IMG/VR virus record: IMGVR_UViG_3300031576_000002
Location: 124,001 to 188,000 of that record
Direction: 5' to 3' (one strand)
Length of the DNA stretch: 64,000 bases
Shown: positions 739 through 28,116 of the stretch, piece after piece
How the letters are laid out: each line of letters begins with the position of its first letter
Position numbering within the stretch: the first letter of the stretch is position 1
Position numbers and translations under genes: made by a program
Notes under the pieces: model-generated
The model's database searches: none
What the model saw: the letters and a program-made list of their open reading frames with translations, nothing else
Told to the model about the DNA's origin: nothing

Positions 739-771
739 CCCTCAAACGTAGCCTGCAACGAGGCTTGCGAA

Positions 772-2339: not shown

Positions 2340-2342
2340 GAC

Positions 2343-7155: not shown

Positions 7156-7160
7156 GACTG

Positions 7161-10928: not shown

Positions 10929-11125
10929 CGCAGGTAGAGGTTATATTCGGCGCTAGTTCCGCTATAGATAGCGCGTTGCACGATCCGTGAAAGAATCACA
11001 TCCAGATCGTAGTGAGCGAGCAGATACTCTTCCGCCTCTTCCCGCGTTGAGAACGTCCCCACCCGCCGAAACAGCAGCTCGCTGAAGCGCTTCAACAGTG
11101 GCGCTGGACGGTAGCCCGCAGTCAT
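10913..11125 (-). CDS. Hypothetical protein
   Basis: 70-aa ORF with overlapping start/stop on both sides. Confidence 0.5.
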   Translation of the reverse strand: MTAGYRPAPLLKRFSELLFRRVGTFSTREEAEEYLLAHYDLDVILSRIVQRAIYSGTSAEYNLYLRWAES

Positions 11126-12033: not shown

Positions 12034-12500
12034 AAGAGCGCTTTTACATTTGGGTGCACAGGAGATGGCAAAGCCTCTGGACTAAACCACCCCCACTCAG
12101 AATTTTCCCAGTTTAGTGCTACATTGCGCGACATCGCTTCCGCAGCGCCTTCTTCCACTTCGACCAGATAAGTAGTGTATGCGAAACCGCCGGAACGATA
12201 TACCGTCTCGCCCGCTCTATGCACTTCTGGCAGCCCGCCAAGCTCTTCCTCCGCTTCTGAAATTGCGCCTGCCCACTCGCTCTCACCAGGTTCTACTCTC
12301 CCGCCGGGAATGCCCCAGAGCCCTGGATCCATCACGTCTTGCGAGCGCTTCACGAGCAGGATTCTACCATCGCCTCGCCGGATCAAAAGTCCGGCTGCGC
12401 GCTTGCCCCACCGCACACGACCTTCCTCGTCACGAGAAAGCTCGCCGCCTTCATCGCGCGGAGCGCCCCACTTGCGTAGAATGGCGACTACTGGCGACAT
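12030..12500 (-). CDS. Nudix hydrolase
   Basis: Nudix box GGRVEPGESEWAGAISEAEEELG (RE replaced by SE); ILLVKRS..GLWGIPGG. Confidence 0.9.
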   Translation of the reverse strand: MSPVVAILRKWGAPRDEGGELSRDEEGRVRWGKRAAGLLIRRGDGRILLVKRSQDVMDPGLWGIPGGRVEPGESEWAGAISEAEEELGGLPEVHRAGETVYRSGGFAYTTYLVEVEEGAAEAMSRNVALNWENSEWGWFSPEALPSPVHPNVKALL

Positions 12501-13486
12501 GCCTGTCTCACCAAGAACCTGCCTGTCCGATCTCCAATCGTGAGCGTCTCTTCCTTGAATCCGTAGGACTTAGCCAAGTTTTTGTAGTAGATCGTGACTT
12601 TGTTTGCGTCCAGAGTAGGATCCCGCTGCCGCAGCGTCTCTTCCGTGTGGATCGCAACTCGATCAATTCCTTTCGATCTCGCCCACTGAAGCAGCGTCGC
12701 CATGCCTTCTTCAGCCCAGTCTGCAAAAAGTGAGAGCGCGTACCGCTTCATCTTGTCCAGCTCTTCGATCGTCAACCCTCTTCGCTCGAACTCGGCCTTG
12801 GTCGCTCCGAACCGCCACGGCTCCACCTTCTCCAGCACTTGCTCTCGGACCTTCACGTTCTCAATGCTCTCGACGAATTCCTCGTACGTCTCGTGCGTCA
12901 AGATCGTCTTGGCCTGATCGAACGCTGTGAATACGTCGCCCTGGATTTCGTCTACCAGGAGAAGATCGTTACTGACCTTGTCCAGCCGGATCCAGCCAAC
13001 AGTCTTCTCTCTAACCGGATGCTTGGAGTAATGGCTACCCTTGTAGATCACGTCAAGGAATTCCTCGAACTCTTCGTACTTGGCGACTAGCTCATCAAGA
13101 TGCGCGGAACGATTGATCTGCATGACGATCTGCTTCGCATCCCGGTAGCTAGTCTCGGGATCGTGATACTTGCCGTAGGATACTTCGTACCTTCCCGGCT
13201 CCAGGTGCTCTAGGTAGGCTTCAATATCTTCGCGCTTCACAACAGGCTGGTTTTTTCTCAGATCTGTGAGCTGCTGTGTATACCTCTGCGAGATGCTCTG
13301 GAACTTGCGCTGGAACTCCCGCCAAGGAAGTTGGTCGAGGTTTTCCCGCTCGTACACTCCAAGAACGTAGCGCAGAGAATCTTCCAGCCGGGAGAGCGTC
13401 TGCTGGGGAACGTCTTGGCCCCGGCGCTTGAGCCTAGTTGGAGTGCTCCCGCCTAAGCATTGAATGGCTTTACGCAATCGTTCCAT
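12488..13486 (-). CDS. Hypothetical protein with GNAT-like DEIQ(S/G)D module (start revised to ATG 13486)
   Basis: HPVREKTVGWIRLD..LVDEIQGD..LLQWARSKGIDRVAI..YYKNL..YGF; homologous to two modules of the 1156-aa ORF. Confidence 0.7.
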   Translation of the reverse strand: MERLRKAIQCLGGSTPTRLKRRGQDVPQQTLSRLEDSLRYVLGVYERENLDQLPWREFQRKFQSISQRYTQQLTDLRKNQPVVKREDIEAYLEHLEPGRYEVSYGKYHDPETSYRDAKQIVMQINRSAHLDELVAKYEEFEEFLDVIYKGSHYSKHPVREKTVGWIRLDKVSNDLLLVDEIQGDVFTAFDQAKTILTHETYEEFVESIENVKVREQVLEKVEPWRFGATKAEFERRGLTIEELDKMKRYALSLFADWAEEGMATLLQWARSKGIDRVAIHTEETLRQRDPTLDANKVTIYYKNLAKSYGFKEETLTIGDRTGRFLVRQACRQ

Positions 13487-13487
13487 A

Positions 13488-13823
13488 TCAGTAAACCGTA
13501 TCTCTTTCTGCGCGGCGGTATTGCGATTCCCAAGAAGTCGCCCAGATGTCGTACACATTCCTGTGACAGTGCGGATGGATCCAGGCGTACTGCAAAGTTT
13601 TTGTGTGCGGCTTTCTACAGATCAAGCAGTTAACGACTTTGGGGAAAGCACGAGGTTTCAGGGGTTTCTTGAAATTCCGCGCAATGCTCTGCGCGACCTT
13701 ACGAGCAGCTCTCTTGCGGCACGTCCTCGTACAACGCTTAACGGCAAAGCCTGCCTTGAACTTCTTCCCGCACATATCGCACACCTTCGTGTAGAGCGGG
13801 CGCTTCTTTTTCATCGGCGTCAC
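13488..13823 (-). CDS. Basic Cys-rich zinc-finger-like protein
   Basis: CDMCGKKF..CTRTC and CLIC..HPHC. Confidence 0.6.
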   Translation of the reverse strand: MTPMKKKRPLYTKVCDMCGKKFKAGFAVKRCTRTCRKRAARKVAQSIARNFKKPLKPRAFPKVVNCLICRKPHTKTLQYAWIHPHCHRNVYDIWATSWESQYRRAERDTVY

Positions 13824-13906
13824 TTTAGAGCGCGCAGCAGCGGACTGTCAGAACCGTCTTTGGCCTTTAGCGCGTAGTCTGGGTCGCAGTAAAAGGAGTA
13901 GTTCAC
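13820..13906 (-). pseudogene. Displaced second copy of the glycoside hydrolase 3' end (28-aa mini-ORF)
   Basis: (V)NYSFYCDPDYALKAKDGSDSPLLRALK vs GH C-terminus GYGLVGGADGDSQLLAELR; GTG overlaps the HNH stop and TGA overlaps the next start. Confidence 0.6.
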
Positions 13907-14493
13907 TTCTCCGAGAGTTTAAGCAGTCTACGCTTTTTCTTGTTTTTAACGGCAATAAATAGCTTATTATTTTCATAGTAGAGCTTAGAGGCGGCTCTTG
14001 CCTTTTCCCGGTAGACAGGGTCTTTAGCGTACCTCTCGCACTTTCTCGCGGCACTAGCCTGCAACCAGGCGTCCGTGCTTTTCTCGATCCGATCGCGCTC
14101 TGTACGACAGGCAATACAGGTCCTACGGCCTTGGTACCAGTATACGTTAGCACCTTCTAGCGCGTGCATACCTTTTTTACAGATATTGGTACGGTGTACA
14201 ATAGCCGAGGGGGCTTTCCCGCGCCCTATATTCTCTGCCTGTGTACACACCTGAAGATGATCTGGATTCACGCAGTCCCTCCGACCACAAACCATGTGAT
14301 CTATTACTAAGCCCGGTGGAATAGGCCCCATGAACATTTCCCACGCTACTCGATGCGCTCCAACCGGCCTGCCATTCTTAGAAAACTTTCCGTAACCTAA
14401 AGCCTTAGACCCGCTCCACAGAAGACAGCCTTCTTCGGACTCCTGGATATAACTCAAGAAGCGTTCTGCAAAGTTAGTAAGCCGTGGAGCCAT
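13903..14493 (-). CDS. Free-standing HNH homing endonuclease
   Basis: GCLLWSG..GYGKF, AHRVAW..GPIP..IDHMVCGRRDCVNPDHLQVCTQAEN. Confidence 0.92.
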   Translation of the reverse strand: MAPRLTNFAERFLSYIQESEEGCLLWSGSKALGYGKFSKNGRPVGAHRVAWEMFMGPIPPGLVIDHMVCGRRDCVNPDHLQVCTQAENIGRGKAPSAIVHRTNICKKGMHALEGANVYWYQGRRTCIACRTERDRIEKSTDAWLQASAARKCERYAKDPVYREKARAASKLYYENNKLFIAVKNKKKRRLLKLSEK

Positions 14494-14515
14494 TTATACC
14501 GTCCGGAGCAGCCGA

Positions 14516-15391
14516 TTAGGGCGCCCTACTCGTAGCTCTAAGCTCAGCTAAAAGTTGAGAATCACCGTCTGCTCCGCCTACAAGTCCGTAGCCGTTTTCT
14601 TCACGCCAGGCATACCACGTCCACAAATCCACTTTCACGCCCAGCCGTGCCCACACGGCGGGCGTCTGCCGGAAGTAGTCGAGATGCTCGTTGCGCTTCG
14701 GACGGCCAAATTCGGTCACCCAGACTTGTTTGCCCTTCTTCCACACATCGTCCACCAGCTCGGCAACCGCAGGCACCCTTTCCCATGAGTCCCCGTACAC
14801 ATGCAGCCCGAACACATCTACCAGGTCAAGACCTCCTCTTTTCACAAACTCTTCATTCAGCCGTAACTTTCCTTCATAGGTCGGTGGAAGCGTTGCCGCA
14901 GAAACGAGTAGTTTCCCCGGCGAGCGCCTGCGTATCTCAGGAGAGATCACACGCAACCAGTCTAGGTACTCCCCAAGTGACCAGCATAAAAATCCTGCCG
15001 CACAGTTGTCTACTTCGTTTTCAAGTTCCCACCCTATCACCCGGCTGTCGTCGCGAAATTTGTCCACCAGTGTAAGATCTGTAGAGGATGTAAGGATCAA
15101 CAAGAATCTGGCATTCAGTGGAGAGTTTTTTACCAGTCTTTCTACGAAACTCTCTGTATCTTTTGGAACTTGCATGCGAATCATCGAAGCGACTGCCATG
15201 ATAGCTGGAACATCTTCTGGTAGGGCTCCACTAGGGTGCAGGTGAATCCCCCGCTGCTTGTAGCTCAGCAGCGGCTGCTCGTCCGGGGGCACGAGAATAT
15301 CCGCAAGCTCAGCACAAGAAGCTGTCAGCGCAAGCGCGGTCAACAGAGATAGGAAGCGCTGCAAGGATCGGCCTTTCGGGTAAGTTGACAT
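14516..15391 (-). CDS. Clan GH-A glycoside hydrolase, predicted lipoprotein
   Basis: Lipobox-like LALTASC; acid/base WELENEV; FGLHVY; nucleophile VWVTEFG. Confidence 0.82.
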   Translation of the reverse strand: MSTYPKGRSLQRFLSLLTALALTASCAELADILVPPDEQPLLSYKQRGIHLHPSGALPEDVPAIMAVASMIRMQVPKDTESFVERLVKNSPLNARFLLILTSSTDLTLVDKFRDDSRVIGWELENEVDNCAAGFLCWSLGEYLDWLRVISPEIRRRSPGKLLVSAATLPPTYEGKLRLNEEFVKRGGLDLVDVFGLHVYGDSWERVPAVAELVDDVWKKGKQVWVTEFGRPKRNEHLDYFRQTPAVWARLGVKVDLWTWYAWREENGYGLVGGADGDSQLLAELRATSRAP

Positions 15392-15403
15392 TTTCAGGAT
15401 TCT

Positions 15404-15411
15404 TACTATAC
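15404..15411 (-). promoter_or_regulatory. GTATAGTA -10-like box
   Basis: Upstream of the GH gene; one of at least 8 copies. Confidence 0.6.
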
Positions 15412-15532
15412 TACTCTCGTGGAACTAGATCCAGAAGTTCTCCAGGAGATCGCTGAGCGCGCTGCTCGAATCTCTAGTCGTGCTCGGTCCATCAATGCCC
15501 GTCTCACTCAGGTAAACGCCAAGGTGGAGGCG

Positions 15533-15721
15533 CTAGCCCTCAAAGCCTCGGTACGTCGTGATAACCTTGAGCACCTCCTCGACGTTCGAGACTCGAAGGT
15601 CGATCCGCTCAAGGTCCGCGTCTAGCGTCCTCAAGACGCTCAAGACGTTGCTCAAGTCGTCCTCACTTACCGGCGCATCTACGGCAGTCAGCAGGCTCAG
15701 GACTGCTTGGATCTCTTTCAT
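15533..15721 (-). CDS. Small coiled-coil hypothetical protein
   Basis: 62-aa heptad-like ORF coupled (ATGA) to the upstream stop. Confidence 0.5.
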   Translation of the reverse strand: MKEIQAVLSLLTAVDAPVSEDDLSNVLSVLRTLDADLERIDLRVSNVEEVLKVITTYRGFEG

Positions 15722-16186
15722 CGTCGCTCCCAGCCGGGCCGATACACTACGTTGATCTGGCTCGCTTCAATCTTGCCAATGTAGATTGCAGAGTAGGCTC
15801 CGGTTTCATCATCAATGGCAGAGTTCCAAGATACTCCCGCCGCCTTTACCTGTTCAAGTATCTGCTCCCCGTTAAGGATTAAAAAATCTCGAATATCGTA
15901 TTGGGGCTCCTCTTCCCCAAAGACCTTCTCCCAGAGCGCAGAACCGCCCACGTTAAAATCTGGAATAAGCCGAGTAGCGTCTACTTCAACTTCAAGTACG
16001 GCAGCGTCCTTACCCCCCCGCACTAGAATACGCTCTAGCCCAGTGTTCGGCAGCATCCGGGTCGTCTACAAGAAACGGGTAGTACAGTCCTTTTTCTAGT
16101 TTCTCGTCGAGGAACTCTTCTCTGACGCCGTGATAGAGCGTAACCGTTCCGGCCAGGAGCTTGATGGATTGGCGGAGAGCACTCAT
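15718..16186 (-). pseudogene. ADP-ribosyltransferase-like gene split by a +1 frameshift at a G7 run
   Basis: VTLYHG..L..GL..PFLVDDPDAAEHWA..AGG(stop) continues as KDAAVLEVEVDATRLIPD in the +1 frame; run at 16013-16019. Confidence 0.55.
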
Positions 16187-16194
16187 ACACTGGC

Positions 16195-19100
16195 TCACCA
16201 GATCCGGGTTTCTATCCCGCTCGGCACGACCAAGAATGCGCGGAAGGGAGGACGCCCAATGCGGGCAGCCAAACGAGAAATCTTACTAGCAATCTTCTTC
16301 TGCCAGATACGGTACGTGTGCTCTTGCTCCTCTTCGTCACCACGCGGAACGAACGAAATCTCTCCCGGCTGGAATCCCATCTGCTGCGGCAGCTTCTCGT
16401 AGTAGCGCCGCACCTTTCTACTCTTTGGCATTCCACCCTCGGAGAGAAGGCCGCCGCGCGTAATGCGCAAAGTATCGTCCGTAGCAAGGTAGAGCATCTT
16501 GACGCCCTTCTCCCTTGCGGCCTCAGCAACGGCTTGAATGAGTGCGTACTCCCACTGCCCCAGCACTTTCTCGATCTGAGGCTTGACCTTGCGGTACATC
16601 GCACTAGGATCGGCTACATCTTGCCCCTTCTCCCAAAGTGTAGGCCAGCCTTTCGGCAAGTCCCTTGAATCATCTGCGACACCGGCTAGCACCTCGTCGA
16701 GCTTCAAAAACTGCTCGTACACATCCGACTGAATCTCGTCCACAAACCATTCCGTATCCGAGAGTGGGTCTATTCTCGCCCAGCCGATCGTCTCTTGACT
16801 CCGCACGGGATGACCCGCGTAAGTGCCCTCTTTCAGCAGGTACTCCATGACTTTCCGAGCAGGTGGCGTCATGCCCTCCAACATCTCTTCTGTCATGTCC
16901 AGGCGGAGAACGGTCTGCCTGACGTTCCTAGATCGCTGGAGTCCGGTCCAGCCCTTGTAAGAAACATCGAACGTATTGCCGGAGCTATCCAGGTAGGCTT
17001 GGATCGACTGCGTGGTGACGTTGTTGCCTTTGACAATACGATCTTTGAAAGACCAGTTCTCAATCCATGGATAGCGCTTCTTGATCTCCCGGAATGGAAT
17101 CGCACCGCCTGCCACTTCTACCTCTTTGAGAAGGGTGCGGAGGAATTCTTTTCCGGGGACGTACTCCACTTTTGAAGATGCTGCACCTGCACCGCCTATG
17201 GTCGCGGGCAGGAATGGATGCTTGCTCCTTAAACTGTTGTACTCCTCTTCTATGTGCTCTACGACATCGTCGAGTCCTGGCGCCAAAGCTGCGGATGAGT
17301 CCAAGATAGCGTGAGCCGCTGTAAGCAGCGGCGGAAGCGTGTCAAAGTGCTCGCATAGACTGCGCAGCTTCTCGTATTTCACGGGGAGTACATCGCCCAA
17401 TTCCTCGTCTAGCTGTTCCAGCAGTGATTCGACAGCAAAATCATGAGCCAACCCTCTGAGCCAGTCGCCCTGGCTGTCGCGTATGAACTTTTCTAGGTCC
17501 TCGTCACTGGCATAGTCGCCAATAAAAGCCGGCCATTCATTGCTGAATTCCTTGACCCAGTCAACATTGTAGCCTTTCGATAACCACTCCATCGTGCTGA
17601 CAACGCCGTAATTAGCGATCTCCTCCTGAAGCGACTCTCCTTCTAAAAAGTTAGCCTTCGCAGAAGGATCCAGTTTACCAAAAACTTTTTCTACGTCATC
17701 GGCGCTCACACGATTCTTAGCGAAGAGGTACTCGTAGAATCCCTCTAGCGCTCTTGCGTCTTCGGCCAGACTGTTATTTTCCGCGTACGTCTTATAGTCA
17801 GACTCGTCCATGTCTTCTACACGGCTCCGCACTTCCTGTTCAAAGTTGTCCTCTACAAGATCCTCGCTCGGATCCTCCATTCTGTACTTGCCCGGCTCTT
17901 CTTGGCAGAAAAGATCATAAAGATAGTCGTGGACTTCCGCGACAAAAGCTTGCTGGCGACGAGTCTCTTCCTGCTGCAAGCGCTCCTGCTCCGCAGGATT
18001 AAGCGGAATCAGTTCCAGTTGCCGCGAATCCGTCGGTATAAGGGGCTCGTACACAGGCGGCTGAAGATCTTCCTGCCCAAGAATGCCAAGCGCTGTCTTC
18101 AAGCGACTGGCGCCTTTACGGGCGCCCAAATCTTTCACCCACAAGTCCGCGTACACTTCCCCGTACAATTTGATCGGGTCTTCAATTTTCTTGAAGCCCT
18201 CTTCTGCGGGCAGCTTCTCGTAGAAGCGCTCCAGCGTCTCGTCTGATGCGCCGCCCCACCGATTCGCCTGGATCTCTGCATTCGTCCAGATCAGATAGCG
18301 AATGTTGTTACGCCGTGCAGCATCCTCCAAGTAATCAATAACCATATCGGTCCAGTCGGAGAATCGGTTAATCAGCGCATTTACAATCCGGTGGACTTTC
18401 TGCTTGCTCAGTTTGTAATCCACCGCCAACTTGCCAATCACTTCTTTATCGAGGTAGCGGTAGATGCTGCGCATGAAATCGCTTTGAATGTTCTCCACCA
18501 CCCACGCCTTGCCAGATTCCCCCACGCTCGGAACAGCAATCCACTCGGGTTCACCATCGATGCGGATGTAGGCAATGGCTTCGCCGTAGTGACCTGGCAA
18601 ACTTTGGCCGTACAGCTTTCGCGCCAGCACCCATCCCGGTTCGCCCGCAATCTGTTTTCCGTCTGCGACAACTGCATTCCAGATTTCATCGGTAGGGTAG
18701 AACGCAAACGTATAGGGCACGTCTGATATTGTAGCGCCCTTGTACTCCTTCTCGCCGCGCTCGACATGAAATGTCATCGGATCTAGGCGCGCTACCGCTT
18801 CCTGAAGCTCGGCTACGGTCGCCTCTGTTCCAATCCGTGCGATAATGTCGCGCCGGATGTAACCCGGCACGTTGCGGAGCAAAGCCTCGATGTCACTCTG
18901 GATGAGCTGTTCATCGGGAGTCCGGCCCTCAAGCTGCTTCTCTACTTCTTGCACACTACGCGGAAGGTGGTCGGCGCTACCGGCATGGTCAATGTCTATT
19001 TCTTCAATTCTTGCTTCTTCTGCCTCATCGCGCTTCTCTTGCGCGATCTCCATGAAACGCTCAAGAGTGGGAATGCCGCGGTTGGAGTAGCCTTGCGCCA

Positions 19101-19665
19101 AATTCATTACCACCCCAGCATCTGCACTGACTATCCAATTATGTTGACTATTAGCTAGAAACTCCTCTCCTAGTGCGTACATGGGATCAGCGTCCGGCCA
19201 GTCTACCCCGTTCCACCATTCCTCTTTCCACGCCCGCAAGCTATCAAATAGCAGGACGTCGATTTTCGCCTGATCCAGACTGGGCAGCACAACCTTCAAA
19301 GCTGCTTCAAGTTCATCGCCGTCAAACTTACTGCTTACGGGGTCTGCCTCTTCAAGAGCATTCCCCGCTTCCTCGCCATGATCTTTTCGGACAATGTCTA
19401 CCGCTGACGACCAAATATCTTTCCCGCCGTCAATGCTTGGACGGTCCTCATCATTCCAATACTCCCATACGTCAAACTCGACATCGGTGCGTCCTACGAC
19501 TACATCAGGAACAAGGTAACGTCCGTAGCGAGCGTCCGCCCCATGGTCCAAGTTCCAGATCGCCTCGTGGGGGAAGAGTTCCTCGATCGCTGCTACAACG
19601 TCTTCGCTACGAATCCCAGGCATTGGACCCTCGACGCAAAAAATCGGACACGGCATCTGCCGCAT
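16195..19665 (-). CDS. Large acidic multidomain (polyvalent-like) protein with two GNAT-like DEIQSD modules
   Basis: 1156 aa; YIRIDG..VVENIQSD..AARRNNIRYL..FYEKLP..GF and WARID..VDEIQSD..AAREKGVKMLYL..YYEKLP..GF. Confidence 0.8.
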   Translation of the reverse strand: MRQMPCPIFCVEGPMPGIRSEDVVAAIEELFPHEAIWNLDHGADARYGRYLVPDVVVGRTDVEFDVWEYWNDEDRPSIDGGKDIWSSAVDIVRKDHGEEAGNALEEADPVSSKFDGDELEAALKVVLPSLDQAKIDVLLFDSLRAWKEEWWNGVDWPDADPMYALGEEFLANSQHNWIVSADAGVVMNLAQGYSNRGIPTLERFMEIAQEKRDEAEEARIEEIDIDHAGSADHLPRSVQEVEKQLEGRTPDEQLIQSDIEALLRNVPGYIRRDIIARIGTEATVAELQEAVARLDPMTFHVERGEKEYKGATISDVPYTFAFYPTDEIWNAVVADGKQIAGEPGWVLARKLYGQSLPGHYGEAIAYIRIDGEPEWIAVPSVGESGKAWVVENIQSDFMRSIYRYLDKEVIGKLAVDYKLSKQKVHRIVNALINRFSDWTDMVIDYLEDAARRNNIRYLIWTNAEIQANRWGGASDETLERFYEKLPAEEGFKKIEDPIKLYGEVYADLWVKDLGARKGASRLKTALGILGQEDLQPPVYEPLIPTDSRQLELIPLNPAEQERLQQEETRRQQAFVAEVHDYLYDLFCQEEPGKYRMEDPSEDLVEDNFEQEVRSRVEDMDESDYKTYAENNSLAEDARALEGFYEYLFAKNRVSADDVEKVFGKLDPSAKANFLEGESLQEEIANYGVVSTMEWLSKGYNVDWVKEFSNEWPAFIGDYASDEDLEKFIRDSQGDWLRGLAHDFAVESLLEQLDEELGDVLPVKYEKLRSLCEHFDTLPPLLTAAHAILDSSAALAPGLDDVVEHIEEEYNSLRSKHPFLPATIGGAGAASSKVEYVPGKEFLRTLLKEVEVAGGAIPFREIKKRYPWIENWSFKDRIVKGNNVTTQSIQAYLDSSGNTFDVSYKGWTGLQRSRNVRQTVLRLDMTEEMLEGMTPPARKVMEYLLKEGTYAGHPVRSQETIGWARIDPLSDTEWFVDEIQSDVYEQFLKLDEVLAGVADDSRDLPKGWPTLWEKGQDVADPSAMYRKVKPQIEKVLGQWEYALIQAVAEAAREKGVKMLYLATDDTLRITRGGLLSEGGMPKSRKVRRYYEKLPQQMGFQPGEISFVPRGDEEEQEHTYRIWQKKIASKISRLAARIGRPPFRAFLVVPSGIETRIW

Positions 19666-19695
19666 CCGAGGCTACAGGACCGCAACTGAAAAGCG

Positions 19696-20403
19696 CTAAG
19701 TCGGGTTGGACTCGAAGGGAGCTTCTTCGGTCTCGGCTGCGTGAACAGCCTGCTGGAGCCTCTGAAGCAGGGTCGAGCCATTCGGCAACTTCTGGAGAAC
19801 AGCTTCTACTTCTCGACGTAGATCCGAATTCGGCTGGCGTAGCTCTGGATTGTGCAGGATCAACTGGATGGCGTCGGCCTGGTCCTTGACCCTCTTCGAG
19901 TCAAGCTTATAGCCCAGCAAGAGCCCCAGAGAGGGCACGAGAAGCTCCGTACCATGCACGGCCGTACGCGCGGACTCACCGCTCATCGCTGCATCGAGCT
20001 TGTCAGGATGGAACACCACTAGCTCGATTACAACGCCTTCCTTGGCGTGCCGCAACTTCACGGGATCCAGGTTACCGCCCTCCCCCGTGACTCGGTCGAA
20101 CCCGTACTTCTTGGAGAGCGCCATGATTGGAGTGAGCGCGTTGTAGTCCACGGCAAAGTCAATATCCTTCGTCGCTCGCGTATAGTTGTAGACGTGCAGC
20201 GCATTGGATCCGATCAAGACGAACTCAACTCCGGCAGCGTTCAAGAGTTTGACGGCATCCTTCATCGCTGCTGCGAAGTTGCCGCCCGCTCGGATATGGA
20301 GTCGTTGGAAAGACTCGCGGAGAAAGGTCGAGTTGAGCGCCATCACCTCATCGAGAGAGGCGGTGGGTGCCAAGCGATTCGCCAAGTTCTTGAGCCGTTC
20401 CAT
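19696..20403 (-). CDS. Nucleotidyltransferase (AbiEii/DUF6036-like)
   Basis: VEFVLIGSNAL..TRATKDIDFAV; GYKLDSKRVKDQAD. Confidence 0.8.
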   Translation of the reverse strand: MERLKNLANRLAPTASLDEVMALNSTFLRESFQRLHIRAGGNFAAAMKDAVKLLNAAGVEFVLIGSNALHVYNYTRATKDIDFAVDYNALTPIMALSKKYGFDRVTGEGGNLDPVKLRHAKEGVVIELVVFHPDKLDAAMSGESARTAVHGTELLVPSLGLLLGYKLDSKRVKDQADAIQLILHNPELRQPNSDLRREVEAVLQKLPNGSTLLQRLQQAVHAAETEEAPFESNPT

Positions 20404-20445
20404 AGCGTGCAGTCTAGCAGAGCTTGCCCAAAAACGTCTCCGGCC

Positions 20446-20856
20446 TTACCGTTCCCGCACAGAGGTCAGGTCAACGATTTCGGCCTGTCCAAACCCCGCT
20501 CTCACCATCCACGGCTTTGGCCTTGTCCAAAGGCTGAACCGGATGATTACATCTGAAATGCGCTTGGCTGCCTTCTTAGAATCTGCCAGGATCCGCTGAT
20601 CTACCACAATAACACCCAACTCATACTCCATTGCAAGAAACACGAAATCCCCTGCATTAGAAGTAATCACGATCTCCCCAGCAGCGACCGTCTTCGCGAT
20701 CTGAGGATCCTTCATTCCCCCCGGTACAGCCTTGACGGTGATGTTCACGGCCTGCAAGCTGTCCAGAATAGAAGAGACGTCTTCATCCAGGACCACACGG
20801 CCTAGGGCCATGCCGGCTCTATCAAGCACCGCCTGAACTTTGCGAAGACGTTTCAT
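20446..20856 (-). CDS. DUF5615/Mut7-C-like PIN-domain protein (start revised to ATG 20856)
   Basis: VVLDEDV, MKDPQI, IVITSNAGDF, GVIVV. Confidence 0.65.
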   Translation of the reverse strand: MKRLRKVQAVLDRAGMALGRVVLDEDVSSILDSLQAVNITVKAVPGGMKDPQIAKTVAAGEIVITSNAGDFVFLAMEYELGVIVVDQRILADSKKAAKRISDVIIRFSLWTRPKPWMVRAGFGQAEIVDLTSVRER

Positions 20857-20903
20857 CGCGATCTCAGAGATAGGCTTGGTGAGGTAGGCTAGAAGATAGT
20901 GCA

Positions 20904-21030
20904 AAGAGGGCGGCAGCATGCCACTTTCGTAGGCCCGGCTCCGCACCGGATCTACAGGAGTGTGTGGCTACATCCCGCTGCGCAGGCGCCAGGGCTTCCC
21001 AGTCCCCCGGGCACTTACTGCCGCCCTTCT
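20904..21030 (-). ncRNA. Putative structured RNA or 5' leader, family unidentified
   Basis: Begins just after a GTATAGTA box; closing stem AGGGCGGCAG/CUGCCGCCCU, inner UGCC/GGCA, and a CCUAC-GAAA-GUGG tetraloop hairpin. Confidence 0.4.
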
Positions 21031-21037
21031 ACTATAC
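21030..21037 (-). promoter_or_regulatory. GTATAGTA -10-like box
   Basis: Immediately upstream of the putative structured RNA. Confidence 0.6.
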
Positions 21038-21178
21038 CCCTCAGAATCACGATTACGCGCGGGCAGCCTCTACGGCCTCACCAGAAGCAACGATCTGCGT
21101 AGACTTGCGTCGAACCCTTTTTAGCGCCTCGACTTGAAGTTCGAGCGGCTGCCCGGCAGCATCGCAACCCTAACTTCT

Positions 21179-21802
21179 CTACGGCCCCAAAAGACGAATT
21201 GCTCTTCTGAGGTAGCCTGCTTGTACCGGCCCGTGCTCGCAATCATTCAGGCTCGGCCGCAAGCGGTGGTAGTAGTTCATGCGAATGGCCCAGTCCATCA
21301 CACTCTTGACTCTGGACGGCTCAGGCGACTCGCCAGGATCTCCCGTGCAGATGTAGCCTTGCAGATTGTCCTCGACGTCAAACACCTTGATTCCGTGCCC
21401 GCCCTCCCAGACAAGCCGGTGCCCGGTCTTCGGATCCTCGTCCTCGATGAGCGGCTCGACTTTGCCGTACTCACCCACGTTCGCGGGATCCGTTTCATCC
21501 CACCAGTGCGCGAGCAGATGCTTCAACCGCGACTCTCGCCGGTGAGGCCGAATCCTTGAAGTCGTGTCCATGTAGCCAAGCCTCCGGTAGTCGAACCCTG
21601 GCAGAATAGCAATCTTCTGCTCCGGGAAATATCCACGCCTTTCCGTTACCGCGGACTGCCCCACGACCTCCGTAAACAGCGCTGGCAGCGCGGCAGGAGG
21701 AACCGTCGCAGCATGCCGGTTGTAGGCTGCGACTTCTCCACGCCCTGAGAAATCAAAGGATCCGGCTAGATGTGCAAGGATGTCATGCACGCCGTTTATC
21801 AT
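21179..21802 (-). CDS. C-terminal half of HNH-split phage protein (..VHDILAH..F..RGE..A..H..TEVVGQ)
   Basis: Matches, from memory, the FR[AG]VHDxxGH...GE...H...TETxGQ motif of phage proteins; its ATG lies inside the HNH 3' end. Confidence 0.7.
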   Translation of the reverse strand: MINGVHDILAHLAGSFDFSGRGEVAAYNRHAATVPPAALPALFTEVVGQSAVTERRGYFPEQKIAILPGFDYRRLGYMDTTSRIRPHRRESRLKHLLAHWWDETDPANVGEYGKVEPLIEDEDPKTGHRLVWEGGHGIKVFDVEDNLQGYICTGDPGESPEPSRVKSVMDWAIRMNYYHRLRPSLNDCEHGPVQAGYLRRAIRLLGP

Positions 21803-22316
21803 GAGGGCAGTAACCGTACAAACCGAGACTCATATTGCAATTACAGCACAAAACCCGGTAACCCTCCGGATAGCCCTCTATTCTAAGCTCGTGAAATATC
21901 TCGCCCCTGTACCGAGATTTAGCTCTATGCTGCCCACCCCCTCCACGGACGTGATCTAAGCACAAAAATTCGAGTAGCTCTTCCCCGCAGCATGCGCAGG
22001 CAGGGTGATCCAGCTTGCTGTAATGGCATAGAGCTTCGTAGCGCTTGCTTCGCCGCCACTGCTTCAAATAAATTCGTCTCCTCTCCCGGAAAACAGGATC
22101 CTTTCCCCGTCGCCTGCTGTACTCTCGGAACTTCTCGGGACTAGCTTTGAAATACTCACGCGCCTGCCCCAAGACCTTCGCTCGAAACTCGGGCTCTTCG
22201 TGATACCGTTTGCGCTTGGCGGCAAGCATGCACGCCTTGCACTTCCCGTAGGTACGGTAAAATTCTCTGCGTAGCTTAGCCGTCCCGCACCGATTACATA
22301 TCTTTAGAGTGTCCAT
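21783..22316 (-). CDS. HNH endonuclease inserted within a gene
   Basis: ICNRCG..CKAC; CACCGE..LCLDHV..GG..YRVLCCNCN. Confidence 0.85.
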   Translation of the reverse strand: MDTLKICNRCGTAKLRREFYRTYGKCKACMLAAKRKRYHEEPEFRAKVLGQAREYFKASPEKFREYSRRRGKDPVFRERRRIYLKQWRRSKRYEALCHYSKLDHPACACCGEELLEFLCLDHVRGGGGQHRAKSRYRGEIFHELRIEGYPEGYRVLCCNCNMSLGLYGYCPHDKRRA

Positions 22317-22695
22317 GCACGTAGCATAACATGAAAATACCCCGAAAGTGAAGGTTCTGATCTTGGGTAAAGAAAGGGTGCTCCGGACCTCCGGTGAATA
22401 CCTTGAGCCGGTTGTTCTGCGTTACGTCCTCGACCATCTCCTCCGCATTGGCGTAAGGATTCTCGTCCACATACTCCACTTCAAACTTAGAAGTAATCCT
22501 GCGGAAAAGCTTGTCAAGATGAGCTACGAGTGCTTGGTAGGACGGCACCGCAGACGCATCGTGAGCAGGCGCTTTCTCGTAAGCAGTAGCAACGGCTTCG
22601 AGGTATTCATCCCAGTCCACTGGCATCAACTTGGCCAAACGCTCAAGTAACTGCGCGTTTTTCTCTGGCGCAGGTGTATAGTAGTCAGCATGCAT
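22294..22695 (-). CDS. N-terminal half of the split protein; start codon supplied by the element end
   Basis: NPYANAEEMVEDV..N.LKVF.GG.EHPFF..QNLHFRG; ATG 22695 lies inside the inverted repeat; original start probably ATG 23940. Confidence 0.7.
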   Translation of the reverse strand: MHADYYTPAPEKNAQLLERLAKLMPVDWDEYLEAVATAYEKAPAHDASAVPSYQALVAHLDKLFRRITSKFEVEYVDENPYANAEEMVEDVTQNNRLKVFTGGPEHPFFTQDQNLHFRGIFMLCYVHGHSKDM

Positions 22696-23914
22696 GACTG
22701 CTTAAGCCGCCACTTGCATAGCAGGTAAGCAGCCTTCTCGTTTCACAGAGGAACTTACAAGCGTATCCTCTCCACGAAGGGATAGCAGAGCCCGGTTTAA
22801 GACGTTTTTAGCCGCGTTGACATCTCTATCAAGGACCAAGCCACAAGCAGAGCAGATATGGACTCTTTCACTCAAACTCTTCTTCACAGTCATTCCACAT
22901 CCGCTGCACTCTTGGCTGGTGCCTCTGGGATTGACTTTTACCACTATCCTACCAGCTTCTTCCGCTTTGTAGGACAGCATGTGGAGCAACATCCCCATTC
23001 CAACATCTTTGAAGCTACGCCTGAATCCACGGCTGAGACCCTGGCTCATACCTTTCAGGTTCAAGTCTTCCACCGCAATCAGATCATACTCTTTGACCAA
23101 AGACTTAGACACTCCATCAAGAATATGCTTCCGAGTTCTTGTAACTTTCTGCCAAGCCTTAGCCAGTACCTTGACGGCTTTCCTTCTACGCTTAGATCCC
23201 TTCTGTCTCCTGGATACCGTTCTTTGAGCATGCTTGAGCTTCTTCTCGTTCTTGGCGTAAACACGTTGCCGCTCAATCAAGATGCCGTCTGAGGTAGCGA
23301 CTAGAGCTTGCATGCCTAGATCAATGCCAATGACTTTGCCAGTCTTGAGAAGAGGAGCTGGAAGCGGTAGCTCACAGGATAAGACGGCGTACCAGCCGTC
23401 AGCTTCTCTTTTGACTGTGACCTCTTTAACCTTGGCATCAGGCGGAAGCTCCCGATAAGGATTCCAGCGGAAGTGTCCCAGCTTGGAAAGATGTAGCTTT
23501 TTGCTGTCAAACTTGAAACCTGACTGATTGTATGTGAAGGAGTCGTACCGATCCCTACTCTTGAATCTGGGAAAGCCTGGCTTCTCTCCACGCTTGACTC
23601 TTCTGAAGAAAGCCTTGTACGTTTTGTCCAGTTTTTGAAGGACTGGGTGAAGAACTCTTGAATAGATCGTGTCATAGCCTTCTACCTGCTTTGAAACATA
23701 CTTAAGCTCTAGGCACTGATCGTAGAAGCTGAGAGTTCTATTATGCTGCTTCCACTCCAGGATTCGTTGTTCCAAAGCACAGTTGTAGAGGAAGCGGCAG
23801 AAATCCAGAAGCCGCTGGAGATTGATCTCCTGGGCCTTGGTAGGTTGGAGGCGGAACTTGTAGGAACGGCGCACGGCTAGAGTGTATCACAAGGGAGTTA
23901 AGGAATCACGCATG
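22689..23914 (-). mobile_element. tnpB-only cassette with terminal inverted repeats and 10-bp TSD (copy 1, 1226 bp)
   Basis: TIRs CATGCGTGATTCCTTAA / CATGCATGACTGCTTAA (14/17); flanks TAGTAGTCAG (22679-22688) and TAGTAGTTAG (23915-23924). Confidence 0.88.
22702..23874 (-). CDS. tnpB: RNA-guided endonuclease TnpB (390 aa)
   Basis: YKFRLQPT HTH; GIDLG, AVEDL, DRDVNAAKN RuvC residues intact; CSGCG/CSACG zinc finger. Confidence 0.95.
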   Translation of the reverse strand: MRRSYKFRLQPTKAQEINLQRLLDFCRFLYNCALEQRILEWKQHNRTLSFYDQCLELKYVSKQVEGYDTIYSRVLHPVLQKLDKTYKAFFRRVKRGEKPGFPRFKSRDRYDSFTYNQSGFKFDSKKLHLSKLGHFRWNPYRELPPDAKVKEVTVKREADGWYAVLSCELPLPAPLLKTGKVIGIDLGMQALVATSDGILIERQRVYAKNEKKLKHAQRTVSRRQKGSKRRRKAVKVLAKAWQKVTRTRKHILDGVSKSLVKEYDLIAVEDLNLKGMSQGLSRGFRRSFKDVGMGMLLHMLSYKAEEAGRIVVKVNPRGTSQECSGCGMTVKKSLSERVHICSACGLVLDRDVNAAKNVLNRALLSLRGEDTLVSSSVKREGCLPAMQVAA

Positions 23915-23938
23915 TAGTAGTTAGTGAAGGGCTCGGCC

Positions 23939-24406
23939 ATGAGTCAACCAGTAAAAAAAATCTCACACCGCTTCACTTGGAGCGACATCATCCGGGAGTC
24001 GGCATGGGCACAGTGGATTCGTATGACTCGGCCGCCAGGCTCGCGAATAACGCATACTCCGTGGGGGTGCATCCTCTCCGACATTCCTTCTGCCCAGCAG
24101 AAAATTGAAGCTCGAAAACTGCGCCGGGCTTACGAGTCTTGGATCGCCCAGGATGAAGAGCGTGCTCGTGACGCAGAGTTGTTCCGATTCTGGACCGCCG
24201 TGTTCCCTCCGCATCGCTTGCTCGTAGAGGTCACCGAAGCTTACGCGGCCGGCTTGCCGTACAAGAATATCCTCCGCGAGTACCGGCTACGGTTCAAAGT
24301 TCAGCCTCTCGGCTGGGCAAAGTGGGAAGCATTTGTTCGAGATCCGGAATCCGGCGGCGGAGTTCTCGTTCCATTCCGGGGTAGCCAAGAAGGAACGTCA
24401 CGATAG
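23939..24406 (+). CDS. Hypothetical protein (rare plus-strand gene)
   Basis: About 155 aa with protein-like composition; overlaps the minus-strand neighbour, so uncertain. Confidence 0.4.
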   Translation: MSQPVKKISHRFTWSDIIRESAWAQWIRMTRPPGSRITHTPWGCILSDIPSAQQKIEARKLRRAYESWIAQDEERARDAELFRFWTAVFPPHRLLVEVTEAYAAGLPYKNILREYRLRFKVQPLGWAKWEAFVRDPESGGGVLVPFRGSQEGTSR

Positions 24407-25499
24407 CGTCTGGACTCTGAAGTACCACGTCTCTCCAAGAGAGCGGGTACTTGGAGTAGGTGAGCTTGATCCCCAGCTCTTCAAAGTTCAATCCAAGCGC
24501 TGGACCGAATTTACGAAACCGGGAAGGAAACTTTCCTATCTCCTCTTCAGGGATGTGCCCTTTGACGTCAAAAGCGAGCGATACGATCACTTCGCTATCC
24601 CTGAGACGGTACATGCCCACGGGTCCGCCAGAGGGCTTGAAAATGATGGATTCTTGATCGAACCAGTTTCCCAGCTCCACCGCATCACGCCACTCCACCC
24701 CTTCTACTAGAATCGACCGCTCCCGCTCAGCGTAGAATCCGTAGACTGGCGTCCAGGAGTACCCTCGACGTTCAAGCTCTGAAGTCAACTCTCCGTGGCG
24801 ACGCCGGTTCTCGGCCCTCGACCTGTTTTCCTTTTCAGTGCGCTCCTCGATCTCCCGATCCCGCCAACGGATCCTCTCCGGTCGCGGAGAGGTCTGAAAC
24901 TCCTTCTCTCGGTCACGCTGTCTCTCCCACTGTTCCGGTACCTTTGGATCGAACTTCACGGCTCTGGGGTCGGGGCGGTAAGCAGACAGAACCGTGTAGG
25001 CTGCGCCCGGCCGCTGAAGGTACTCCAGATCCGTCACGCTAATCCCCAGCAAAGCTATCGCCCGTCCGAGAATGCCGGCCTGCACCTTGGGCACGTTAGA
25101 CCGCCATCCCGATCCGGGCGGCTTCTCGCGCGGATCTTTGCTGACAACCATCTCCTCCCAGAATTCCCTTACGCCAGGGCCTAGCAGTTGCCGCATCGGT
25201 CGCACGGCTTCCATGGGAACGGTTGGATAGATGCCGTCCCCACCAAGCTGACCGCTGAGAAGATCAACTTCGACTCCACCCGGCAATAGATTCCAGTTGT
25301 GGACTTGCCCGTCTGGGAGACGGCCATAGGCGATCTTGCCGCCTAGCTCTTGCTGCACGGCAAAGGCCACAGCAAGCGAATCCTTGGCCGTCGCTCCTTG
25401 GCTGTGAACGAGGCGCTGTACCTCTTGAAGTAGCGGCACAAAGTCGGCTGGAACTTCTCGCCCCTGCCCCAGCAGACTCAGAGCCCTGGCAAGAATCAT
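24294..25499 (-). CDS. YunG-like plus DUF3293-like fusion protein
   Basis: LAVAFAVQQELGG..HNWN.LP.G.EVDL..Q (YunG-like); VLSAY..ENRRRHGEL..L..GY...E.SILV..A.ELG..F.QESI (DUF3293-like). Confidence 0.65.
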   Translation of the reverse strand: MILARALSLLGQGREVPADFVPLLQEVQRLVHSQGATAKDSLAVAFAVQQELGGKIAYGRLPDGQVHNWNLLPGGVEVDLLSGQLGGDGIYPTVPMEAVRPMRQLLGPGVREFWEEMVVSKDPREKPPGSGWRSNVPKVQAGILGRAIALLGISVTDLEYLQRPGAAYTVLSAYRPDPRAVKFDPKVPEQWERQRDREKEFQTSPRPERIRWRDREIEERTEKENRSRAENRRRHGELTSELERRGYSWTPVYGFYAERERSILVEGVEWRDAVELGNWFDQESIIFKPSGGPVGMYRLRDSEVIVSLAFDVKGHIPEEEIGKFPSRFRKFGPALGLNFEELGIKLTYSKYPLSWRDVVLQSPDAIVTFLLGYPGMERELRRRIPDLEQMLPTLPSREAEL

Positions 25500-26510: not shown

Positions 26511-27077
26511 CTACTGCCGCTTCGACGGTCGTTTCCTAGGCTTCCGGGATTCCACAAGTAACCTAGCTATCTCGTCGAACTCTTTCACAGCGTCGGGATC
26601 TACGATCGCCAGCAGCGCTCTCACCGTCGCCGGCTCGAAGGCTCCGGCGTCGTGCAACGCTTGGATGTCCCACAGGTCAAGAGGCTGGTTGGCGTAGAAC
26701 TTTGCCATGACCAGCAGTTCCACGGGAAAGGTAGGAGCGTTCGTCCCCCACAACGTCTTCTGCACGGGATGGTCGATCGCCGAGGCTTCGGGTTCGTCCT
26801 CGGCGAAGAGCACGTCTACACGTTCCTTCACCCCACTAGCACCTGGAGGAAGGGCGATGTAGTGGTGCGGCGCAAAAACACGGTCCACTTGGAACCCGGC
26901 TTCCCGCAACGTCTTGAGCACTCGCCCCCTATCTCCCGGGCGGAAGAATGCGTCTACGTCCGCCGTGTACCGCGCAACGCCGTGCGCGTTCACAGCGGCT
27001 CCGCCTCCGACGGCATAGTCGATGCCCGCAGGCCCGACTGCTTGCACCAGGAGCTTCAGGATCTCTGCGGCTGTCAC
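26511..27077 (-). CDS. Nucleotidyltransferase family protein
   Basis: IDYAVGGGAAVNAHGVARYTADVDAFF; LLVMAKF....DLWDI. Confidence 0.8.
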   Translation of the reverse strand: MTAAEILKLLVQAVGPAGIDYAVGGGAAVNAHGVARYTADVDAFFRPGDRGRVLKTLREAGFQVDRVFAPHHYIALPPGASGVKERVDVLFAEDEPEASAIDHPVQKTLWGTNAPTFPVELLVMAKFYANQPLDLWDIQALHDAGAFEPATVRALLAIVDPDAVKEFDEIARLLVESRKPRKRPSKRQ

Positions 27078-27307
27078 GGTTCTTTCTTAGACGGCTTACT
27101 CACAGCCTTGGCCTGGAATGCCTGCATGACCTTCTGCCGGATGAGCTGGGGATTCACGGCGACATCCACGAACCCCAAAATCTCGTAGGCCGATGTGAAC
27201 CCCGACCAGGTAATGCTCACGCCCTTCCCGTCTTCTTCCGAGATCGTGATCTTGCGCGTCTTGCTGTCTTTCTTCAAGGTATCCTCCAAATAGAAACGGG
27301 GACGCAA
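27074..27307 (-). CDS. Hypothetical protein
   Basis: 77 aa, coupled to the NTase start. Confidence 0.55.
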   Translation of the reverse strand: MRPRFYLEDTLKKDSKTRKITISEEDGKGVSITWSGFTSAYEILGFVDVAVNPQLIRQKVMQAFQAKAVSKPSKKEP

Positions 27308-27339
27308 GCGTCCCCGTTTCTCAAGCGCTGATAGCGGAC

Positions 27340-28116
27340 TCAGTCGTCGCTACCGTCATCGCCATCATCATCGTCGGTGCTGTCGTCGTCGTCACCATCA
27401 TCGTCCGACGCCTCCGCCTTGGCAGTGCCCTCGTCGTCCTCTCCGCCTCCCTCGGCTGCCTCCTCTTCCTTCACCTTCTTGGCCTTCTTGACCTTCTTGG
27501 GAGCTTCCTCCTCCTCCTCAGCCTTGGCCTTCTTCACCTTCTTGGGGGCCTCCTCCGGCGCCTCAGCGGCCTTGGCCTTCTTACCCTTGCCCGTGTACTC
27601 GCCCCGGCCAACCTTCCTGAGTTCGCCCGCGTCACAGGCACGCTTGAGGTGGCCACTCGCACCCACGGCTTCGATCTCGAAGTGCTTCGCCACGTCGGTC
27701 GGGCTCACGACGTCCTTCTGCGCAGAGACCCACTCCACGACGGCCGACATCTTGAGCCGCTTCTTCTCACTCTTTGCAACCTTCGGCTTCTCCGTACCGG
27801 CTGCCTTCACCTTGGCAGGCCGTCCGCGCTTTTTCGGCGCCTCGGTCGTCTCCTCCACCTTCACCTTGGCGGGCCGCCCCCGACGCTTCACGGGTGCGTC
27901 GCCGTCTCCCGTGGACTCGGCCGAAGCCGCCTTCACGAACGCGGAGACGAGCCCCAGTGGAATGCTGGACGCTCCCACGGTCACGTTGCCGGTGCCGTTC
28001 GCGCTGAACAGCACTTCGTCGCCCGCGTGCAGGGTCACTCGGCCACCCTTGGAGGACACGAGGCCGACGCCCTTCTGGTACTCCTGGCTCTTCGCAACTT
28101 CGATCCTGAAATCCAT
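27340..28116 (-). CDS. Histone/HMGA-like nucleoid protein: two AT-hooks, winged helix, Lys-rich repeats, acidic tail
   Basis: KRRGRP and KKRGRP; SPTDVAKHF..ASGHLKRACDAGELRKVGRGEY; APKKVKKAK x2; poly-Asp C-terminus. Confidence 0.8.
   Translation of the reverse strand: MDFRIEVAKSQEYQKGVGLVSSKGGRVTLHAGDEVLFSANGTGNVTVGASSIPLGLVSAFVKAASAESTGDGDAPVKRRGRPAKVKVEETTEAPKKRGRPAKVKAAGTEKPKVAKSEKKRLKMSAVVEWVSAQKDVVSPTDVAKHFEIEAVGASGHLKRACDAGELRKVGRGEYTGKGKKAKAAEAPEEAPKKVKKAKAEEEEEAPKKVKKAKKVKEEEAAEGGGEDDEGTAKAEASDDDGDDDDSTDDDDGDDGSDD

Follow-up and report, generated by a model that had tools for sequence, protein, structure and literature searches.

A short recurrent peptide at the boundaries of polyvalent-type effector modules in a 205-kb phage contig

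The 64,000-nucleotide stretch analyzed here (the window) covers bases 124001-188000 of a 205,227-bp viral contig (IMG/VR record IMGVR_UViG_3300031576_000002), which IMG/VR classes as linear and for which CheckV estimates a completeness of ∼85%. Almost all of its genes lie on the minus strand. The genome encodes a T4-like replication set (DNA polymerase, UvsX-like recombinase, DnaB-like helicase, and SbcC), and its structural genes include those for a baseplate wedge, tail sheath, head decoration protein, major head protein, and head-maturation protease. By major capsid protein (MCP), the nearest GenBank relative is Virus Rctr197k (41% identity), followed by the PaBG/Lu11/RSL1 group (∼25 to 27% identity). 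Between 11.4 and 27 kb, the window holds an accessory region with three or four HNH endonuclease genes and a TnpB gene, together with genes for a Nudix protein, nucleotidyltransferase-like proteins, a lipoprotein glycosyl hydrolase, a fusion of YunG and DUF3293/SAM-lyase, and three copies of a GNAT-like module. Our subject is a short peptide that recurs on proteins of this region and that a first-pass annotation had read as a candidate capsid-targeting or processing tag.

The annotation had placed this peptide at the termini or domain junctions of unrelated accessory proteins. Each of the nine peptides it quoted (9/9) translates on the minus strand at the position assigned to it (Table 1), and the placement holds for six strong copies and for an excess of terminal matches outside this seed set. 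In the 401-aa (amino acid) protein, the copy at 25044-25085 does fall between domains, as the YunG match spans residues 44-92 and the DUF3293/SAM-lyase match spans residues 223-290; the same protein carries a second copy at its N terminus. The N-terminal copies at 13486, 16186, and 25499 begin at ATGs, and their ribosome-binding sites are mostly plausible. Overall, the tag occurs on GNAT-like, YunG, DUF3293, and nucleotidyltransferase folds and on orphan proteins.

Table 1. Copies of the peptide and the proteins that carry them
Feature	Peptide	Coordinates	Strand	Carrier or context	Profile score
GNAT-like polyvalent-protein module		window 12488..13486	-	stand-alone 332-aa gene; relatives inside giant proteins	
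N-terminal copy	MERLRKAIQCLG	window 13451..13486	-	332-aa GNAT-like module protein (12488-13486)	
N-terminal look-alike	MKEIQAVLSLLTA	window 15683..15721	-	62-aa open reading frame (ORF) (15533-15721)	9.5
N-terminal copy	MSALRQSIKLLAG	window 16148..16186	-	58/62-aa ORF (16010-16198); TVTLYHGV next	
Weak copy	KISRLAARIG	window 16255..16284	-	after second GNAT-like module, 1156-aa protein	7.3
Junction copy	ASRLKTALGILG	window 18076..18111	-	directly after first GNAT-like module of 1156-aa protein (16195-19665)	22.3
Weak N-terminal copy	MERLKNLANRLA	window 20368..20403	-	235-aa nucleotidyltransferase-like protein; only M-x-x-L register common	5.3
Weak N-terminal copy	MKRLRKVQAVL	window 20824..20856	-	internal ATG of 166-aa ORF	9.3
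C-terminal copy	...VQAGYLRRAIRLLGP-stop	window 21182..21226	-	end of 207-aa protein (21179-21802)	28.5 (top)
Junction copy	VQAGILGRAIALLGI	window 25041..25085	-	between YunG and DUF3293/SAM-lyase modules, 401/425-aa protein (24294-25499/25571)	
N-terminal copy	MILARALSLLG	window 25467..25499	-	same 401-aa protein; GGGAGA 6 nt upstream of ATG	25.5
C-terminal	...LQRAISMLERYAG...	genome 6924-7607			
N-terminal	MQSIQRALSLLA	genome 20425-21108			
N-terminal	MSFLQNAIALLA	genome 29531-30463		nucleotidyltransferase-like	
N-terminal	MKHLRNALHLLA	genome 102095-102412			
N-terminal	MQRLSRIIRAIG	genome 104312-104680		acidic repeat protein	
N-terminal	MYALIRAIRILT	genome 107754-108023			
C-terminal	...LQRAIRILKVG-stop	genome 112590-112820		inside head module	
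C-terminal	...LKRAIRMLEAGNHG-stop	genome 204497-204745			

The closest match among the copies joins VQAGYLRRAIRLLG (21185-21226) and VQAGILGRAIALLG (25044-25085), which are identical at 11/14 residues, as first reported. Codons differ at 8 of these 11 identical residues, and nucleotide identity is only 26/42. An all-against-all scan of 14-mers over a 286-protein gene call returned 13 protein pairs with at least 11/14 identities; 11 of them are paralogues or internal repeats, and the best pair is one of the two that are isolated. Twelve shuffled proteomes yielded no pair at or above 11/14 and 0.5 pairs per proteome at 10/14, and BLASTP on the best pair alone gave E=0.005. Because the shuffles never reach 11/14 and the codons differ, we regard the match as nonrandom and conserved at the protein level. 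By sequence comparison, then, the peptide is real and under protein-level constraint. No shared DNA was found upstream of or within the tags, and a DNA or RNA element at the gene starts was rejected, there being no conservation and no Rfam match in the 11-27.5 kb interval.

For a genome-wide extension, a regular expression derived from the six copies retrieved 6 matches versus 0.04 expected and was rejected as circular. Small hidden Markov models (HMMs) were replaced by a BLOSUM62 profile of the nine core columns of the six seed copies, which was tested against its reverse, column-permuted profiles, and real control proteomes. In the 281 non-seed proteins of this genome, 20 matches scored at least 15, and half were terminal, with 7 lying in the first 20 residues and 3 in the last ∼12. 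The corresponding counts were 11 matches (2 terminal) for the reversed profile, a mean of 8.1 (1.4 terminal; maximum, 6) for 60 column-permuted profiles, 10 (1 terminal) for RSL1 (AB366653; 58% GC), and 16 (2 terminal) for Rctr197k (63% GC); genes of both control phages were called with the same caller as this genome. Terminal position thus accounted for 10/20 matches here versus 3/26 in the two control phages (Fisher p=0.005), and Met lay exactly three residues before the motif in 5/20 versus 0/26 (p=0.011). At scores of at least 19, this genome had ten matches and the controls had 1 and 0. The same class was also among the best nonparalogous pairs when N termini were compared all against all in an unbiased way: M-x-x-[LI]-x-x-[AS]-[IL]-x-[LI]-[LI] begins at least nine proteins, and MSALRQSIKLLAG found a de novo partner in MSFLQNAIALLAG, which belongs to a protein encoded at another genome location.

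Internal matches are about equally frequent in all three genomes (∼10-15 per 60,000 residues in the controls), and an internal LRRALRLIG in RSL1 scores 25.8; therefore, a single internal copy has little weight alone. Likewise, position is the main support for the junction copy at 18076-18111, because RSL1 has an equally strong internal match. This genome stands out by the number of its strong copies and by their location at protein ends.

These comparisons bear on the possibility that the whole pattern is chance, with LLG-ending helices being common and look-alikes having been picked by eye. The background of internal matches in the controls, LRRALRLIG of RSL1 included, fits this explanation, as do the leave-one-out HMMs, which recover only the VQAG pair well and fail for four of the six copies, and the weak copies, which are noise by score. 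Set against it are the 11/14 pair, the surplus of high-scoring matches, and the excess of terminal and Met-at-minus-3 matches outside the seed set, and we consider chance very unlikely. The search of the whole proteome for further copies, which had been proposed as a check, was borne out in part: look-alikes elsewhere in the genome show a terminal excess, while the weak copies stay within noise.

The three weaker copies that the annotation had added (profile scores, 5.3-9.3) are not above chance. The two N-terminal ones, MERLKNLANRLA and MKRLRKVQAVL, have nothing but the M-x-x-L register in their favor. Support for KISRLAARIG comes only from its position, which is equivalent to that of the 18076-18111 copy, after the duplicated module. 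The N-terminal look-alike MKEIQAVLSLLTA was found solely by the unbiased N-terminus comparison, in which it scores 26 against MQSIQRALSLLAS. Two further candidates were discarded. LQRFLSLLT in the 291-aa glycosyl-hydrolase-like protein (window 14516-15391, minus strand) is a false positive that forms part of a lipoprotein-type signal (…LTALALTASC). KARTIAMLG, which follows DVPDPAD in the head-maturation protease, was set aside as evidence of capsid targeting because it aligns with DMPADPKALQVEILK of the Rctr197k protease and looks like a conserved end of the catalytic domain; its score of 15 is within background.

Homology assigns the carrier proteins to the class of polyvalent effectors, and the peptide marks the boundaries of their modules. 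Among 1.84 billion representative proteins, a search found 161 relatives of the 332-aa protein, and many of these relatives are 991-3089 aa long and hold the module at varied internal positions. Alignments to these relatives start at query residues 25-32, i.e., after the tag. The giant relatives carry ART-PolyVal, Tpt1/KptA, LigT, and GNAT domains, and one is encoded on a 454-kb contig. Within the window, the 332-aa protein has a paralogue in the C-terminal third of the 1156-aa protein (E=2e-13), which holds the GNAT-like module twice, so that three paralogous copies are present. The DUF3293 homologue in Rctr197k lies within a 923-aa protein, where DLARTALGPLG occupies the equivalent place ∼20 aa before the module. 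For the C-terminal copy at 21182..21226, the ∼115 residues preceding the tag had no homologues in the searches run. Homologues of that 207-aa protein were rejected as a test of the tag, since they align to its first 90 residues only and have no C-terminal tag.

The AlphaFold2 (AF2) model of the 332-aa protein, built with 25 homologues in the alignment, has a confidence score (predicted local distance difference test [pLDDT]) of 88. The tag is modeled as a lone helix at residues 2-10 (pLDDT about 54), residues 9-23 are disordered (pLDDT <50), and the confident fold begins at ∼residue 29; its fold matches are weak and all GNAT acetyltransferases. For the 401-aa protein, AF2 without an alignment gave a pLDDT of 43, at which secondary structure alone is usable. 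A tag helix is predicted in both models, and the residue pattern is amphipathic, with a net charge of 0 to +3 and few aromatics. A free helix on a flexible linker, as seen in the one good model, is what would be expected of a leader peptide.

Could the helix be an inherited cap without a common function? On this explanation, the carriers descend from polyvalent proteins by duplication, fission, and fusion and have kept a homologous N-terminal helix and linker for folding or solubility. The three GNAT-like modules in the window are paralogues, a related helix precedes DUF3293 in Rctr197k and the GNAT-like module in a foreign polyvalent protein (P0057), and the HNH genes and TnpB could have fragmented larger genes, one gene being visibly split by an HNH-like ORF. 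However, unrelated folds carry the tag, the tag is detached from the fold in the model, and its retention in the face of saturated synonymous change speaks for selection acting on the peptide itself. We therefore rate common descent without function as quite unlikely.

A parallel boundary peptide occurs in other lineages. In foreign polyvalent proteins, [S/N]-L-L-K-K-A-[D/E]-V-P-E lies directly upstream of the GNAT-like module; in P0057, for example, GKALRLVGGKTAAVPDD takes the place of MERLRKAIQCLGG...QDVPQQ of this phage. LLKKA is found 12 times in 149 relatives versus 0.4 expected, and it reappears at second, unrelated junctions (positions 129 and 256 of P0054, 188 and 291 of P0055, 394 and 548 of P0056, and 1665 of P0072). 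Several foreign relatives begin exactly with such a peptide (MSLLKKADVP, MSLLTKK, MSLLDKH, MSLLHKK, and MNKLLKKGG), and LL is twice as frequent in the first ten residues (15/130) as internally (5.2%). Given this parallel, this genome is not alone in having a boundary peptide that may lie at either terminus or internally, although the sequence of the peptide varies from lineage to lineage. Overall, we hold it quite probable that the peptide represents a true boundary or leader element.

In both lineages, the internal copies are preceded by K/V-x-[AG]-[SG], which raises the possibility that the peptide is a processing signature, i.e., the site at which a head-maturation protease or host enzyme cuts polyvalent precursors into modules. 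Cleavage would take place at, for instance, small residues before the helix, and the stand-alone N-terminal copies would be remnants of gene fission. The pre-motif is seen here in KGAS/RLKTALGILG, VQAG/YLRRAIRLLG, VQAG/ILGRAIALLG, and KKIAS/KISRLAARIG (slashes mark its end) and elsewhere in KTGS/LLKKA, KSAS/LLKKA, and KIAS/LLKKA, and removal of Met from MSLLKKADVP or MSLLTKK would leave what a cut before SLLKK yields. The genome encodes a head-maturation protease, and cutting of polyvalent proteins into units has been proposed by Iyer et al. (PMC5512222). On the other hand, a cleavage site alone gives no cause for the fixed M-x-x-L register at ten or more stand-alone N termini, and what is conserved is an amphipathic helical pattern, not an extended P4-P1' site. 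Scans of the tagged proteins and of other window proteins detected neither MPTase nor any other peptidase family. We rate a processing signature as unlikely, though it deserves some weight.

The reading we favor treats the peptide as a portable amphipathic helix of ∼10-12 residues with a Gly/Ala cap and the consensus L-[RKQ]-x-[AS]-[IL]-x-[LIC]-L-[GA]. Most modules in this genome are separate genes with the helix at the extreme N terminus, in M-x-x-L register and joined to the fold by a flexible linker; in fused modules the helix sits in the junction, and in a few proteins it forms the C-terminal end. It would most likely act as a docking (leader) peptide that gives many unrelated modules a single shared binding partner, for which the interior of the assembling prohead (scaffold or inner capsid surface) is the best candidate. 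Docking there would load anti-defense and host-takeover enzymes for injection, much as the capsid-targeting sequence (CTS) of T4 or the signal of P1 DarB does, and the head-maturation protease may trim the tag at the small residues flanking the helix. Docking, the identity of the prohead as partner, and cleavage are steps that we infer. The prohead is ranked highest because polyvalent proteins are expected to be delivered with the DNA, as the N-terminal signals of T4 proteins and P1 DarB achieve, and because giant phages remove terminal propeptides and a protease and a scaffold-like protein are encoded here. The head genes include an HK97-type major head protein (genome 115116-116303; phrog_2522, E=2e-47), the head-maturation protease (genome 118755-119624; phrog_18299, E=8e-36), and an acidic scaffold-like protein of 547 aa (genome 117115-118758). 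On this analysis, the capsid-tag reading of the first-pass annotation is plausible as a docking leader with the prohead as its likeliest partner, and we adopt it tentatively.

Several observations weigh against prohead docking. The C-terminal and between-domain tags are unlike a T4-type N-terminal leader, a single tag per polyprotein would be enough for packaging, and the tagged genes are scattered along the genome beyond the head module. Matches to gp21 (PF03420) and gp23 (PF07068) are absent from the 205-kb record, in searches whose controls also found nothing. No L/I-x-E site follows the tag; the tags end in LL[GA] and continue with G, S, T, Q, D, or P. Statistically, the significance is moderate (p about 0.002-0.01) with thresholds picked after viewing the data, the leave-one-out models fail for most copies, and one internal RSL1 match equals the 18076-18111 copy in strength. 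Terminal enrichment is absent in the nearest relative, Rctr197k, and almost none of the tagged proteins are shared with Rctr197k and RSL1. Finally, the trait was not traced beyond this genome: megablast of 15 kb against phages gave no match, tblastn matched only the DUF3293 part (in Rctr197k), a search of 5.8 billion proteins with the 401-aa protein returned only itself, IMG/VR scans with that protein and the MCP gave no match, and a metagenome scan returned only the contig itself.

The helix might instead dock to a partner other than the prohead, such as the inner membrane (in the manner of MinD or FtsA), a chaperone, or a phage hub protein, and the effect would be to concentrate accessory enzymes or to regulate them. 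Chaperone sites of the DnaK type have a Leu-rich core with basic flanks. The tag has hydrophobic residues at positions 1, 4, 5, and 8, basic residues at positions 2, 3, and 6, and the net charge given above; it is terminal or on linkers, and function at either terminus is typical of short docking motifs. One C-terminal copy (...GYLRRAIRLLGP-stop) presumably resembles the MinD tail in style, and the genome encodes a protein with weak J-domain similarity (E=0.0013, below the Pfam cutoff). However, several copies are nearly uncharged (e.g., MSFLQNAIALLAG and MKEIQAVLSLLTA), the aromatics usual in membrane-targeting helices are missing from the copies, no candidate partner was identified, and the link to polyvalent modules points to delivery over localization. 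We accordingly give a partner outside the prohead a low probability.

Prohead docking would have precedents. In T4, according to the accounts in PMC9024508 and PMC10052503, which cite Mullaney and Black (1996), the CTS of IPI-III and Alt is a short N-terminal peptide on unrelated proteins that is sufficient for prohead loading and injection, and the cargo includes anti-restriction and host-modifying enzymes. The peptide described here is similar in being a short leader at the extreme N terminus common to unrelated proteins. The T4 CTS is confined to N termini and terminates in L/I-x-E, the gp21 site, whereas the sequence here is unrelated, has no Glu site, and occurs also at C termini and domain junctions. 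The T4-specific features thus do not carry over: no tag ends in L/I-x-E, gp21 and gp23 are unmatched, and a different head-maturation protease is present. Given the different sequence, the missing L/I-x-E, and the lack of detectable gp21 and gp23, the peptide is, as judged from its sequence, not a member of the T4 CTS family.

P1 DarB, a large multidomain anti-restriction protein of the polyvalent type, is targeted to the capsid through its first 30 residues (PMC9024508). The N termini of the P1 Dar proteins have no common consensus (PMC9024508), whereas here one consensus occurs on many proteins. In giant phages, the substrates of SPN3US gp245 and phiKZ gp175 lose N-terminal propeptides of 20-254 aa to the prohead protease, which itself carries a C-terminal propeptide that is also removed (PMC10052503). 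SPN3US and phiKZ are jumbo phages that package many proteins, and their propeptides have in common only the cleavage motif A/S/G-x-E, not a helix. The head-maturation protease of the present phage belongs to a PHROG family other than that of the SPN3US and phiKZ proteases.

Polyvalent proteins were predicted by Iyer et al. (2017; PMC5512222) to be packaged, injected, and processed into units. The module kinds are the same as here (ART-PolyVal, GNAT-like, nucleotidyltransferase, and anti-restriction), although in this genome the modules are mostly split into single genes. That study describes no conserved junction or leader peptide, and the word "linker" occurs in it 0 times.

Encapsulin cargo-loading peptides and the C-terminal targeting tail of the HK97 protease are short terminal peptides that dock cargo inside an HK97-fold shell, with the terminus used depending on the cargo; the encapsulin-type consensus (LTVGSLKG-like) is not matched by the tag. 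The pre-toxin motifs of polymorphic toxins (VENN and PT-TG) are short conserved peptides that demarcate exchangeable effector modules, being either conserved at the DNA level for recombination or sites of autocleavage. Unlike these motifs, the tag is not conserved here at the DNA level.

A broader reading is that jumbo phages mark injected polyvalent modules with a lineage-specific peptide that both docks to the prohead and delimits the cuts in the precursor, the marker being L-R-x-A-I-x-L-L-G here and S-L-L-K-K-A in the other lineage. We regard this generalization as speculative and unlikely. Injected phage proteins are known, through virion proteomics, for a handful of model phages. If the tag acts as proposed, it would make the packaged, injected proteome of uncultivated phages readable from sequence alone, would explain how modules fuse and split without loss of delivery, and could be reused as a small handle for loading foreign cargo into capsids. 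Even with another function, a boundary peptide would help in parsing giant multidomain phage proteins into units.

Further observations concern genes in or near the tagged set. The tagged 62-aa ORF overlaps the next ORF (112 aa) by 47 nt in another frame (window 15718-16198, minus strand); these ORFs may represent two genes or a single frameshifted ART-like module. For the LYHG region of the 62-aa ORF, similarity to ART-like modules is weak: an HMM built from the ART-like modules of polyvalent homologues had this ORF as its only genome-wide match, at a nonsignificant E=5.4. At window 21179-22695 (minus strand), a gene family that is represented by a single ∼210-aa gene in cyanophage-like contigs is split in two: a 133-aa ORF (22294-22695) matches residues 9-118 of the homologue, and homologue residues 116-207 are matched by the start (first 90 residues) of the 207-aa ORF. 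Between the halves lies a Cys-rich 177-aa ORF (21783-22316) that is HNH-like by eye and has no Pfam match; no Rfam intron was found in the split-gene region.

In the head module, the major head protein and a 141-aa protein (119846-120271) adjoining the protease have in common a different N-terminal peptide (MKMSNPYLQLGAA and MAAPNPYRDLGAW), which may be a second leader of head-module proteins. In RSL1, five small proteins (67803-77828 and 148377-148697) have a common N-terminal M-x-Y-[DN]-I-x-A-A-V-x-R-L and may be paralogues.

The TnpB (OrfB_IS605/Cas12f-like TNB) gene is present in two nearly identical copies ∼144 kb apart (window 22702-23874, minus strand, and genome 2747-3919). At genome 102423-104296, a 46-aa ORF (METGIHLLFDCRTR...) repeats the N terminus of a SAM-decarboxylase-like gene (MQTGLHLLFDCRVR...) at 11/14 residues, and two paralogous HNH genes separate them; this has the appearance of another gene start duplicated or displaced through insertion of homing endonucleases.

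At window 26511-28116 (minus strand), a 258-aa protein encoded upstream of a 188-aa AbiEii-like nucleotidyltransferase looks like the partner in an AbiE-like pair. It has two RGRP (AT-hook-like) motifs, a weak AbiEi_4 winged helix, KK/AP-rich repeats, and a poly-Asp tail; the Pfam matches of both proteins are under the curated cutoffs. Just downstream of the accessory region in the direction of transcription, window 1-11000 (minus strand) holds a block of glycosyltransferase and methyltransferase genes that may have a role in DNA or surface modification.

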